Assembly: GCF_046119375.1 (NCBI RefSeq) | Contig: NW_027362767.1 | Span: 255,688,001 to 255,752,000, forward strand | Reading direction: 5' to 3' | Source: Phyllobates terribilis | Lineage: Eukaryota | DNA length: 64,000 nt | In this document: positions 29,301 to 31,657 of the stretch, one piece after another | Layout: every line of letters starts with the position of its first letter | How positions within the stretch are numbered: position 1 is the first letter of the stretch | Program-made: the position numbers and the translations under genes | The notes under the pieces: model-generated | What the model was told of the DNA's origin: nothing | The model's input: only the letters and a program-made list of their open reading frames with translations | Database searches by the model: none

Positions 29301-31657
29301 AGCAGCGGCGATGGCAGGACGTGCTAAGTCCAGGAAATTATAGATTACAAACTACTGCACTCTACAGTTATTGCAAAACTACAACTCCCAGCATGCTCAG
29401 GGGGCAGTATATGAAGAGCCAGACAGCACAGTAGGATCCATACACAGGCATCACGTCCTCGGCACATTTCCAGGAACTATTTTGAAGAAGTGGAAATGAG
29501 AAGTTGGCACCGCTGGACGAGGCGCAGCCGAAATGTGGCCTCGGTGGAAGAACATGGAGGGGCCGTGTGTGACAACGTGTGCGCACCATTAGGAAATGTG
29601 GTTTATAGAGAGAAAGAAATATACATACAAAGCTATACAATCATAGCACCCAACACTCAGTGCACCGCCGTGACGTCACACCCCTCCCTATACACCAACT
29701 ACTACATACTGTGATGGAATCACACCCCTATACGCTGAGCGGGACGCCCCGTGATGACGTCACACCCCTATACGCTGAGCGGGACGCCCCGTGATGACGT
29801 CACACCCCTATACGCCGAGCGGGACGCCCCGTGATGACGTCACACCCCTATAAGCTGAGCGGGACGCCCCGTGATGACGTCACACCCCTATAAGCTGAGC
29901 GGGAGGCCCCGTGATGACGTCACACCCCTATACGCTGAGCGGGAGGCCCCGTGATGACGTCACACCCCTATACGCTGAGAGTGACGCCCCGTGATGACGT
30001 CACACCTCTATACGCTGAGAGTGACGCCCCGTGATGACGTCACACCCCTATATACTGAGTGTGACGCCCCGGGATGACGTCACACCCCTATATACTGACG
30101 TCACACCCCTATACACTGAGTGTGACGCCCCGTGATGACGTCACACCCCTATATACTGACGTCACACCCCTATACACTGAGTGTGACGCCCCGGGATGAC
30201 GTCACACCCCTATACGCTGAGAGTGACGCCCCGTGATGACGTCACACCCCTATACGCTGAGAGTGACGCCCCGTGATGACGTCACACCCCTATACGCTGA
30301 GAGTGACGCCCCGTGATGACGTCACACCCCTATACGCTGAGAGTGACGCCCCGTGATGACGTCACACCCCTATACGCTGAGAGTGACGCCCCGTGATGAC
30401 GTCACACCCCTATAAGCTGAGAGTGACGCCCCATGATGACGTCACACCCCTATATACTGAGCGTGATGCCCCGGGATGACGTCACACCCCTATACACTGA
30501 GCGTGATGCCCCGGGATGACGTCACACCCCTATACACTGAGCGTGATGCCCCGGGATGACGTCACACCCCTATACACTGAGCGTGATGCCCCGGGATGAC
30601 GTCACACCCCTATACGCTGAGAGTGACGCCCCGGGATGACGTCACACCCCTATATACTGAGTGTGATGCCCCGGGATGACGTCACACCCCTATATACTGA
30701 GTGTGATGCCCCGGGATGACGTCACACCCCTATATACTGAGTGTGATGCCCCGGGATGACGTCACACCCCTATATACTGAGTGTGATGCCCCGGGATGAC
30801 GTCACACCCCTATATACTGAGTGTGATGCCCCGGGATGACGTCACACCACTATATACTGAGTGTGATGCCCCGGGATGACGTCACACCCCTATACACTGA
30901 GCGTGATGCCCCGGGATGACGTCACACCCCTATACGCTGAGCGTGATGCCCCGGGATGACGTCACACCCCTATACGCTGAGAGTGACGCCCCGTGATGAC
31001 GTCACACCCCTATATACTGAGTGTGATGCCCCGGGATGACGTCACACCCCTATATACTGAGTGTGATGCCCCGGGATGACGTCACACCCCTATATACTGA
31101 GTGTGATGCCCCGGGATGACGTCACACCCCTATATACTGAGTGTGATGCCCCGGGATGACGTCACACCACTATATACTGAGTGTGATGCCCCGGGATGAC
31201 GTCACACCCCTATATACTGAGTGTGATGCCCCGGGATGACGTCACACCCCTATATACTGAGTGTGATGCCCCGGGATGACGTCACACCCCTATACGCTGA
31301 GAGTGACGCCCCGTGATGACGTCACACCCCTATATACTGAGTGTGATGCCCCGGGATGACGTCACACCCCTATATTCTGAGTGTAATGATGTCATGACAT
31401 AGCTCCATTTGCACCGCTGACACAATACTGCCGTTCCCGAACGTTACAGTCATGACACAATGACGTCATCACACGACATATCGCCAAGCGATCCCGCAAT
31501 AAGAACAGAAGAGTCTCAATGTCAGAGGAAAGAAGAGCCGCGCTCACCTCTCGCTGGACCACAGGAGCACTGGCACCTGCTGGGAGGTGGCGGCTCGCCA
31601 TGGCACCCCCAACACCAGGAGGAAGCAGAGAGGCACGAAGCACATCCCATCCGCCAT
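20392..31657 (-). CDS. ATP6AP1: V-type H+-ATPase accessory protein 1 (Ac45), 10 coding exons, 454 aa
   Basis: Exons (-): 31657-31548, 29148-29022, 28880-28806, 26165-25972, 24190-24150, 23997-23912, 22349-22108, 21850-21815, 21638-21395, 20601-20392. All introns are GT-AG with consistent phases; total 1365 nt. Features: signal peptide [55 protein letters not shown], an RPSRVNR furin-type site, and C-terminal [19 protein letters not shown]...MDRFDDPKG. Confidence 0.97.
20640..21185. repeat. Degenerate ~70-97-bp tandem repeat in ATP6AP1 intron 9
   Basis: CCAGAGCTGCACTCACTATTCTGCTGGTGCAGTCACTGTGTACATACATTAC recurs about 7 times. Confidence 0.85.
23048..23084. repeat. (GT)n microsatellite
   Basis: Direct reading. 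Confidence 0.95.
24307..25894 (-). mobile_element. DD38E (Intruder-type) Tc1-like transposon in ATP6AP1 intron 4, left terminus lost
   Basis: Inverted repeats at 24307-24533 and 25628-25854 overlap the 3' end of the ORF. The right end retains ...GTGTGTCCAAACTTTTGGTCTG(TGTG)TA; the outer ~40 bp of the left end is replaced by an A/TA run. Confidence 0.9.
24429..25481 (-). CDS. Uninterrupted 350-aa DD38E transposase
   Basis: [12 protein letters not shown]...; [16 protein letters not shown] and SPDLNPIE motifs, with 38 residues between the second D and the E (counted). Confidence 0.9.
   Translation of the reverse strand: MTRKKQLSKEKRVAIITLRNEGQSVRKIGQTLKVSPSAVAKTIKRYKETGSHEDRPRKGRPRVTSASEDKFIRVTSLRNRRLTAAQIRDQVNATQSSSSRHISSTTVKRRLCAAGLHGKIAARKPLLRTGNKQKSLVWAKEHKEWTLDQWKSVLWSDESKFEIFGSNHRVFVRRRKGERMDSTCLVPTVKHGGGGVMVWGCFAGETVGDLFKIEGILNQHGYHSILHRHAILSGLRLVGPSFIFQQDNDPKHTSRLCKGYLTEKESDGVLRQMTWPPQSPDLNPIEMVWGELDLRVKAKGPTSAKHLWELLQDCWKTISGDYLLKLIKRMPRVCKAVIKAKGGYFEEPRI
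26926..26981. repeat. (TA)n microsatellite
   Basis: Direct reading. Confidence 0.95.
27058..27393. repeat. Foldback (inverted) repeat, ~140-bp arms
   Basis: CCTATTAATATCAGCTCACAGCTGTCTGCATAGC is mirrored by GCTATGCAGACAGCTGTGAGCTGATATTAATAGG, with flanking arms also complementary. Confidence 0.8.
27670..27923 (-). mobile_element. tRNA-derived SINE
   Basis: On the - strand: GGCAGCACGGTGGCTCAGTGG (A box)...GGGTTCAAATCCC (B box), ending in a (TTA)n tail. Confidence 0.85.
28540..28754. mobile_element. One end of a piggyBac-like non-autonomous element
   Basis: Ends in GGTCGTTAAGGGGTTAA, i.e. TTAA+CCCCTTAACGACC on the - strand. The other end was not found. Confidence 0.45.
29669..31385. repeat. 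40-bp minisatellite in ATP6AP1 intron 1, each unit with a TGACGTCA palindrome
   Basis: Unit GTGATGACGTCACACCCCTATACGCTGAGCGGGACGCCCC and variants; ~41 units plus two half-units. Confidence 0.97.

Follow-up and report, generated by a model that had tools for sequence, protein, structure and literature searches.

A CRE-bearing 40-bp tandem array in the first intron of frog ATP6AP1 looks like a young, length-variable minisatellite

VNTRs that lie beside promoters and carry transcription factor motifs in their units are familiar from the human genes INS and MAOA. The literature searched contained no natural cellular array of CREs and no CRE minisatellite. As for repeated CREs in other settings, those of the HCMV major immediate-early enhancer give cAMP/PKA-responsive activation (PMC6116278), and the CRE of mouse IAP LTR1/1a elements is kept silent by methylation, whose removal allows CREB1 to bind (PMC9729108). 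More generally, methylation of the central CpG blocks CREB1 binding to the full CRE in vivo, CREB1 peaks in mouse are nearly confined to active genes with unmethylated CpG-island promoters, and a CRE located within a repeat becomes a strong activator once unmethylated (PMC9729108). Here, we describe a tandem array whose unit contains the octamer TGACGTCA, within a 64,000-nt stretch of Phyllobates terribilis DNA (hereafter, the window). An earlier, sequence-only reading of this DNA rightly identified the octamer as the full CREB/ATF site, whose binding by CREB1 is sensitive to central-CpG methylation (PMC9729108), and proposed regulatory roles for the array. As detailed below, the array looks like an ordinary young repeat of variable length, not a proven regulatory device.

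The host gene is ATP6AP1 (Ac45), encoded on the minus strand, and searching its exons singly returned Pfam matches to Ac45-VOA1_TM (3.5e-22) and VAS1_LD (1.3e-18). Translation places the coding part of exon 1, which includes a signal peptide, at 31548–31657 (minus strand; start codon 31657–31655), and the remaining exons were recognised as exon-like ORFs within 20395–29148 on the same strand, with the luminal-domain exon within 21338–21649 and the last exon at 20395–20586. Intron 1 (29149–31547, minus strand; 2,399 bp) is bounded by GT at 31547–31546 and AG at 29150–29149. Since an RNA contig (X12, record 9) joins the end of exon 1 (31548) to the start of exon 2 (29148), with 29119–29148 as its loose end, the array forms part of intron 1 and is spliced out, which confirms its earlier placement just downstream of the first exon of ATP6AP1. 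The array leaves with the intron and yields no abundant RNA of its own: RNA depth was ~3,300–3,700 over 31548–31631 in exon 1 and 2–8 for the array contigs, or roughly one thousandth of exon depth. A structured-RNA interpretation was rejected, as no Rfam family was found and single-strand DNA folding was only moderately better than that of shuffles (z –2.0 to –3.9).

Upstream of the start codon, the 5′ UTR and a TATA-less promoter occupy 31658–32338 (minus strand; CpG o/e ~0.5). Motifs picked by eye in this region comprise, as candidates, two CCAAT boxes, a GC box, two copies of GCGCATGC, a TGACG half-site and an E-box, TCATGTGA, ~30 bp before the ATG. A scan for bacterial-type promoters and terminators, irrelevant to an animal gene, gave no matches. 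The spacer between TAFAZZIN and the ATP6AP1 promoter is filled by a CpG-rich minisatellite of 63-bp units (32339–37728; ~83 copies by TRF, CpG o/e 0.77), one of at least 10 minisatellites that TRF detects in the window. Kinship between the 40-bp and 63-bp units was considered and dropped, with 29/500 shuffles scoring equally.

By TRF, the 40-bp array spans 29720–31388 (period 40, 41.7 copies, 93% matches, no indels), and its 1,669 bp take up a share of 0.696 (~70%) of intron 1. It shows the features of the minisatellite class, namely head-to-tail units of period 40 extending over more than 0.5 kb at a single locus, and a search of the whole window found the unit body only within 29721–31381. 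The regular pattern is broken by two truncated 21-bp units (30075–30095 and 30136–30156) in a duplicated 61-bp block. On the left, the array is flanked by a diverged unit (29669–29719) with an intact octamer at 29671–29678 together with CACACCCCT; next comes an octamer that has decayed, TGGAATCA (29715–29722). Local alignment of this flanking sequence to the 40-bp unit scored 30, a value matched by 0/500 shuffles. At the promoter-side edge, the last, truncated copy carries another decayed octamer, TGATGTCA (31387–31394), altered from CpG to TpG. An isolated full CRE, ATGACGTCAT, lies further on at 31461–31468, 79 bp within intron 1. Beyond the octamer, this copy resembles the 40-bp unit weakly (ATGACGTCA-CAC; score 19, reached by 14/500 shuffles); given such weak similarity, we did not adopt it as the unit's seed, although either that role or kinship with the unit is conceivable.

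Across the window, TGACGTCA occurs 44 times, all within 29671–31468, compared with a mean of 0.46 and a maximum of two in dinucleotide-preserving shuffles. This bears out the previously reported number of about 44 perfect octamers, but not quite their distribution: besides the isolated copy at 31461, which stands as described, the regular array contains 42 copies (29755–31364; 40-bp spacing save at the two truncated 21-bp units) rather than 43, the remaining one (29671) sitting in the diverged flank unit, 84 bp from the next. Likewise, the statement that every 40-bp unit carries the octamer holds for all 39 full units but fails at both array edges, where it has decayed. The reported distance of ~160 bp between the array end and the exon 1 donor agrees with the 159 bp found here. 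At the composition of the array, the probability of one full CRE in a 40-bp unit is 5.3e-4. Because one 40-bp unit holds one such 8-mer, the octamer excess represents one chance event and not 44 independent ones, and the same lesson in counting applies to many perfect motif copies within any homogenised array.

Site number also bears on the earlier suggestion that the array acts as a CREB/ATF sink, titrating bZIP factors away from other targets. Full and half CREs number many thousands in a vertebrate genome, and factor molecules number thousands in a nucleus. Set against these figures, 42 sites per haploid genome make a sink quantitatively implausible; the sites are, moreover, probably methylated (see below), and nothing but their number at one place speaks for such a role, which we regard as scarcely credible.

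The sequence-only reading had further noted that the octamer stays invariant while neighbouring CpGs vary. Indeed, the octamer is unchanged in 39/39 full units, and nine other unit positions vary, the neighbouring CpGs it named among them. No octamer changes were found in unit contigs of a second individual, of two sister species (B and C) or of the RNA run. Statistically, the invariance is unconvincing and lies within neutral expectation, as judged by the absence of variable positions within the octamer (p = 0.10), the longest invariant run (p = 0.16) and a CpG-aware Poisson model of zero octamer changes (P(0) = 0.05). Given these values and the decayed edge copies, selection on the octamer is not a convincing explanation. 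Unit variants are arranged in blocks, and identity between units shows a second peak at a lag of 8–9 units, a rise that indicates multi-unit duplication. The loss of the octamer from both edge copies, in one of them through a CpG-to-TpG change, is what weak homogenisation would produce. The test results, the block structure and the edge decay thus favour the caveat of the sequence-only reading, in which homogenisation by itself could account for the invariant octamer. Three observations fit a neutral VNTR less well: a perfect CRE in 42/42 interior units exceeds the expectation of the weakest test (P = 0.05), the CpG-rich unit has five CpGs of which that of the CRE is alone in having no variant at all, and the octamer is unchanged in the unit contigs of all four runs.

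Block duplications next to a promoter might also be the footprint of a recombination hotspot, in which a bound CRE would attract meiotic breaks in the manner of fission yeast M26, and misrepair would build and reshuffle the array. A search for PRDM9 in amphibians came up empty (PMC5519329), and CRE-like M26, CCAAT and oligo-C sites act as factor-dependent hotspots in S. pombe (PMC9097252); because frogs appear to be without PRDM9, meiotic breaks would be expected at sites that resemble promoters and are bound by factors. However, the M26 mechanism is not established for vertebrates, and mitotic slippage suffices to generate minisatellites. In the window's remaining GC-rich arrays, TGACG half-sites at first looked enriched, a hint of CRE hotspots that was discarded when they proved no more frequent than in dinucleotide-preserving shuffles (P = 0.26). 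By analogy with yeast, a hotspot origin is conceivable, yet we consider it quite improbable.

Comparison of individuals and species drew on read contigs from the non-repetitive promoter-side flank plus two units (31300–32400). In a WGS run from another individual (X5), the terminal unit differs from the reference, as seen in contigs only, and the commonest reference variant reached ~2.4x single-copy depth versus 14 such units in the reference. These contig differences suggest a VNTR. Unit contigs in the same run had a depth of 24–42x, compared with 17.6x for single-copy sequence, which fits one locus, and a 1,088-nt contig spans the last units, exon 1 and the promoter. The 40-bp unit was also found in the sister species B and C, there in its CpG-rich form, which marks the CpG-poor one as derived. 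Another candidate reading, that of a mini-promoter of CRE, CACCC and TATA in each unit, was rejected: TATATA occurs only in the derived variant, having arisen by CpG decay (TACG to TACA to TATA), and array RNA amounts to about one thousandth of exon depth.

The same data weigh on whether the array is an assembly artefact or the internal repeat of a transposon. Long tandem arrays are hard to assemble, and the reference may not give the exact number of units; still, contigs with the unit arose in independent runs from another individual and two sister species, and one of them links the last units to exon 1 and the promoter. As to a transposon, no direct or inverted repeats or TE termini were found in the flanks of the 40-bp array, where alignments were no better than shuffles, and the absence of further copies in the window as well as the single-locus depth led us to reject a transposon-borne repeat. 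Either origin appears very improbable.

Of 12 substitution types, seven affect the eight CpG positions outside the CRE, mostly as transitions, and in the CpG-rich unit 4/5 CpGs have variants, TpG/CpA or other. Next to the promoter, the derived CpG-poor variant dominates (2.4 versus 3.7 CpG per unit), the units nearest to the promoter being the poorest (rho 0.64). As read from the sequence, this pattern of decay suggests germline methylation of the array, which would block CREB binding; together with the CpG-poor units on the promoter side, it leans against an unmethylated, bound array. The array as a whole (GC 0.58, CpG o/e 0.92 over 1,669 bp) lies above the sequence thresholds for CpG islands (GC above 50–55%, CpG o/e above 0.6, length above 500 bp), yet in cold-blooded vertebrates sequence-defined islands are poor predictors of non-methylated DNA (PMC3583005). 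Also at odds with a neutral VNTR is its position 160–1,830 bp from the exon 1 donor, adjacent to an active promoter, where a CpG o/e of 0.92 would suit a non-methylated island.

These properties are central to the main competing proposal. The array, possibly joined by the 63-bp array upstream, could be an unmethylated extension of the promoter and a multi-CRE intronic enhancer, with CREB/ATF1/CREM or ATF2/7 occupying up to 42 sites and delivering a copy-number-dependent cAMP/stress input. Perfect full CREs recur every 40 bp from ~180 bp beyond the exon 1 donor, array CpG o/e is high, the interior CRE CpG is never mutated, the octamer is unchanged in contigs of the second individual and of species B and C, and ATP6AP1 is strongly expressed in the RNA run. 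The mouse preference of CREB1 for unmethylated CpG-island promoters, the activation from unmethylated repeat CREs (PMC9729108) and the functional short CRE repeats of the HCMV enhancer (PMC6116278) would be in keeping with such a role. Against it, homogenisation can account for the invariant octamer, octamers at the array edges have decayed, the remaining unit CpGs show deamination-type decay that is strongest nearest the promoter, island-like sequence says little about methylation in cold-blooded vertebrates (PMC3583005), and the true promoter has CCAAT, GC-box and E-box elements of its own, as read by eye. No literature on CREB control of ATP6AP1 was found. The copy-number-tunable cAMP enhancer of the sequence-only reading is thus possible but gained no support, and the decay of neighbouring CpGs and the CpG-poor promoter-side units lean against it; we rate it as unlikely.

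Our preferred explanation, which we hold to be probable, is a young, single-locus minisatellite (VNTR), variable in length and composition, that was homogenised from a CRE-containing stretch. It would have originated when replication slippage or unequal exchange tandemly duplicated a promoter-proximal stretch of ~40 bp that happened to hold a full CRE. The 42 identical octamers would then reflect recent common descent combined with block duplication or conversion, the copies not having been individually selected. By their sequence, they would be competent to dock CREB/ATF bZIP dimers, with occupancy hinging wholly on an unmethylated central CpG. Judging by the CpG decay, most of the array is probably unbound, and any effect on ATP6AP1 is likely to be small and unselected.

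A more far-reaching scenario would unite several of the above proposals. Here, the 40-bp and 63-bp arrays would form a repeat-built, copy-number-variable non-methylated island around the CpG-poor ATP6AP1 promoter, whose CREB/ATF-bound CREs would give a V-ATPase assembly gene a cAMP/stress input tunable by dosage and, in a PRDM9-less frog, would also attract the breaks that sustain array turnover. We regard this combination as improbable. Should the array be unmethylated and bound, a classic inducible element would exist in naturally varying copy number on a housekeeping V-ATPase gene, offering a ready test of enhancer strength against site number, and the locus would be a case of repeats building a promoter CpG island in a cold-blooded vertebrate.

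Returning to the preferred reading of a homogenised VNTR, the frog array shares with VNTRs of the INS/MAOA type its head-to-tail units in the 10–100-bp range, its single locus by a promoter, a factor motif in each unit and apparent variability between individuals, and differs from them in its full palindromic CRE, its 42 perfect copies and in having no known expression association. It places CRE units near a start site, as do synthetic reporters with multimerised CREs and the HCMV major immediate-early enhancer with its 19-bp CREB/ATF repeats, and in those systems the repeats give cAMP/PKA-responsive activation (PMC6116278). Those CREs, however, number a handful, alternate with other motifs upstream of the start site and have been proven by mutation, whereas the 42 frog copies are intronic candidate elements. 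The M26 site of fission yeast has an ATGACGT-type core for an ATF/CREB dimer that is contained in GATGACGTCA of the frog unit; M26 is a single yeast site shown by genetics, whereas the frog window, with its unremarkable TGACG half-sites, lends such a function no support. With mouse IAP LTR1/1a, the array has in common a perfect TGACGTCA in repeated DNA, and by this analogy methylation-gated, IAP-like behaviour is the most likely one for the frog array; the IAP CRE, however, is one site per dispersed LTR promoter, whereas the frog CREs form a local tandem array devoid of transposon signs.

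On the minus strand, positions 31657–31548 translate to 36 residues followed by GTGAGC, and exon-like ORFs downstream on the same strand match the Pfam families Ac45-VOA1_TM (3.5e-22) and VAS1_LD (1.3e-18), identifying the gene as ATP6AP1/Ac45. Upstream on this strand, an ORF of TAFAZZIN type carries the NHQSCMDDP motif, consistent with the usual gene order. In a conspecific, probably RNA-derived run, a 975-nt contig ends its exon 1 match at 31548 and continues with letters identical to 29119–29148; intron 1 therefore spans 29149–31547 (2,399 bp, GT...AG) and is precisely spliced. 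The 40-bp minisatellite fills 70% of this intron and ends 159 bp from the exon 1 donor, just inside intron 1 as the sequence-only reading had placed it. There was no indication of array-driven transcripts in the probable RNA run, where array-unit contigs had depths of 2–8 vs. 3,300–3,700 for exon 1 (as in all runs, these are contig depths, which do not convey transcript starts, ends or expression levels). Upstream of the promoter, at 31991–32223, the same run yielded a 3x contig, which may stem from trace DNA or from upstream or read-through transcription.

The ATP6AP1 promoter (31658 to ~31870, minus strand) is TATA-less and, read by eye, contains two CCAAT boxes, a GC box, two GCGCATGC motifs, a TGACG half-site and an TCATGTGA E-box. 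Its CpG observed/expected ratio (31658–32338) is only ~0.5, as compared to 0.92 for the 40-bp array and 0.77 for a 63-bp array (32339–37728) that is unrelated to the 40-bp unit and fills the spacer up to TAFAZZIN. As a CpG-poor promoter thus sits between two CpG-rich minisatellites, any sequence-defined CpG island at the 5′ end of ATP6AP1 would consist of repeats.

Across the 64-kb window there are 44 copies of the full CRE octamer (CREB/ATF site), TGACGTCA, all between 29671 and 31468, whereas dinucleotide-preserving shuffles contained 0.46 copies on average and two at most, confirming the CRE array described from sequence alone. Tandem Repeats Finder called a single array (29720–31388; period 40, 41.7 copies, 93% matches, 0 indels). 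Splitting the sequence at every octamer assigned 42 of them to the regular array (29755–31364), spaced by 40 bp save for a pair of units shortened to 21 bp (30075 and 30136) in a duplicated 61-bp block; of the remaining two, one sits in a divergent left-flank unit (29671) and one is isolated (31461). That every unit carries the octamer holds for these 42, but not for the two outermost copies, which have decayed to TGGAATCA (29715–29722) and, by a CpG-to-TpG change, to TGATGTCA (31387–31394). A perfect 12-bp palindrome, ATGTCATGACAT (31389–31400), overlaps the latter on the promoter-side edge of the array. Outside the array, the 64-kb window contained no further copy of the unit body; the flanks shared no direct or inverted repeats, and no Rfam family was found for the array. 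Outside its octamer, the isolated CRE has slight similarity to the unit (scores this high arose in 14 of 500 shuffles) and may be a relative or the seed.

Across 39 full units, we distinguished 17 variants with nine variable positions (13, 19, 20, 22, 26, 28, 31, 37 and 38, counted from the T of the octamer). None falls within the octamer, whose reported invariance amid varying neighbors thus stands. Nine randomly placed variable positions would spare all eight octamer positions with a probability of 0.10, and the longest invariant run, 14 positions, was reached in 16% of random-placement trials. A model with separate CpG and non-CpG rates (seven substitution types on eight non-CRE CpG positions, five on 24 others) predicts 3.0 octamer events, with P(0) = 0.05. 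The constraint signal on the octamer is at best marginal. Unit variants run in blocks (BBBBB, CCC, AAAAAD...AAAADAA) and identity peaks again at a lag of 8–9 units, which shows multi-unit duplication; the units are not independent. Such blocks, together with decayed edge copies, have the appearance of a normal homogenised minisatellite, in line with homogenisation having been named previously as a possible cause of the invariance.

Variation and age were assessed by comparing 31300–32400, comprising non-repetitive flank and two units, with the sequencing runs. In DNA contigs of a second individual, a 1,088-nt contig spans the last units, exon 1 and the promoter, and its terminal unit differs from the reference. 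The commonest reference variant, present in 14 units, reached a depth of 41.9 there vs. 17.6 for single-copy sequence. The array therefore appears to differ between individuals, as judged from contigs rather than spanning reads, and the same depths rule out a dispersed satellite. Two sister species match the window at 99–100% identity across exon 1 and promoter and also contain the unit, so that the array's origin predates the split of these close relatives. Their small 2020 libraries appear to derive from exon capture; they are strongly enriched for exon 1 and contain 302-bp pieces over exon 1 and the promoter (31478–31815), with depths >100 and adapters at both contig ends.

The CpG-rich unit harbors five CpGs, four of them with variants, mostly TpG or CpA (TACG to TACA to TATA; GCG to GTG; GACG to GATG; CCG to CCA), including both the TACG/TATA and GACG/GATG changes noted earlier; the CRE CpG is the sole one without a variant among the 39 full units. 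As both sister species carry the CpG-rich form, the most frequent variant of this assembly, which is CpG-poor, is derived. This variant gained a 6-bp TCACAC/GTGTGA inverted repeat, which could favor slippage and is not remarkable; single strands of three units fold moderately better than shuffles (z −2.0 to −3.9). CpGs per unit (29755–31364) increase away from the promoter (rho 0.64, with units rendered non-independent by block duplication), averaging 2.4 in the 18 promoter-nearest units, where the derived variant dominates, vs. 3.7 in the 21 farther ones. Subject to that non-independence, the gradient runs opposite to that expected from protection by a promoter-centred unmethylated zone. CREB1 binding to its motif requires an unmethylated central CpG, supporting the claim that methylation blocks CRE binding, and CRE-bearing repeats are silent while methylated (PMC9729108); in cold-blooded vertebrates, dense CpG is no proof of an unmethylated state (PMC3583005). 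From CpG decay, gradient and these studies combined, we infer past germline methylation of the array, which is probably methylated, with most of its sites unoccupied. The CRE enhancer of tunable copy number proposed in the sequence-only reading found no positive support and, though possible, seems unlikely.

A recombination hotspot would be an attractive origin of the array, given that PRDM9 has not been found in amphibians (PMC5519329) and that the M26 hotspot of fission yeast is CRE-like (PMC9097252). However, the sole test of this idea failed: three GC-rich arrays (9718–10279, 32339–37728 and 48091–48984) hold about one TGACG/CGTCA half-site per unit, a frequency not above dinucleotide-preserving unit shuffles (P = 0.26). 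The last of these, a 32-bp array (27.9 copies, 98% identity), is the most homogeneous in the window and presumably very young. In a 45-bp array (9477–9697), three units hold GGGCAGGAGG, matching the classic minisatellite core GGGCAGGANG, of which the window has four matches vs. 0.8 expected. Downstream of ATP6AP1, two A/C-rich arrays (212–9393, ~9 kb; 10690–12791, ~2 kb) with units of ~38 bp show extreme strand asymmetry (GC skew ~−0.8). Tc1/mariner-like transposase ORFs (350 and 355 aa, plus a broken copy) lie at 24429–25481 (−), 15518–16585 (−) and 13709–14661 (+), one of them within an ATP6AP1 intron.

A random 40-bp unit of the same composition contains TGACGTCA with a probability of 5.3e-4, and at least ten minisatellites occur in this window alone. 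For a genome containing tens of thousands of such arrays, a few would be expected to carry a full CRE by chance, and the number would be higher if array formation favors promoter-proximal DNA, in which CREs are frequent. We favor, with moderate confidence, a young and unexceptional VNTR, homogenised, in which the unit contained a CRE by happenstance. That the array acts as a CREB/ATF sink, the other proposal of the sequence-only reading, is implausible on numbers, given the abundance of CREs in vertebrate genomes. No description of a CRE minisatellite occurring naturally in cellular DNA turned up in our literature search; its nearest known counterparts are motif-bearing promoter VNTRs, the 19-bp CREB/ATF repeats of the HCMV enhancer (PMC6116278), and the methylation-gated CRE in mouse IAP LTRs (PMC9729108).
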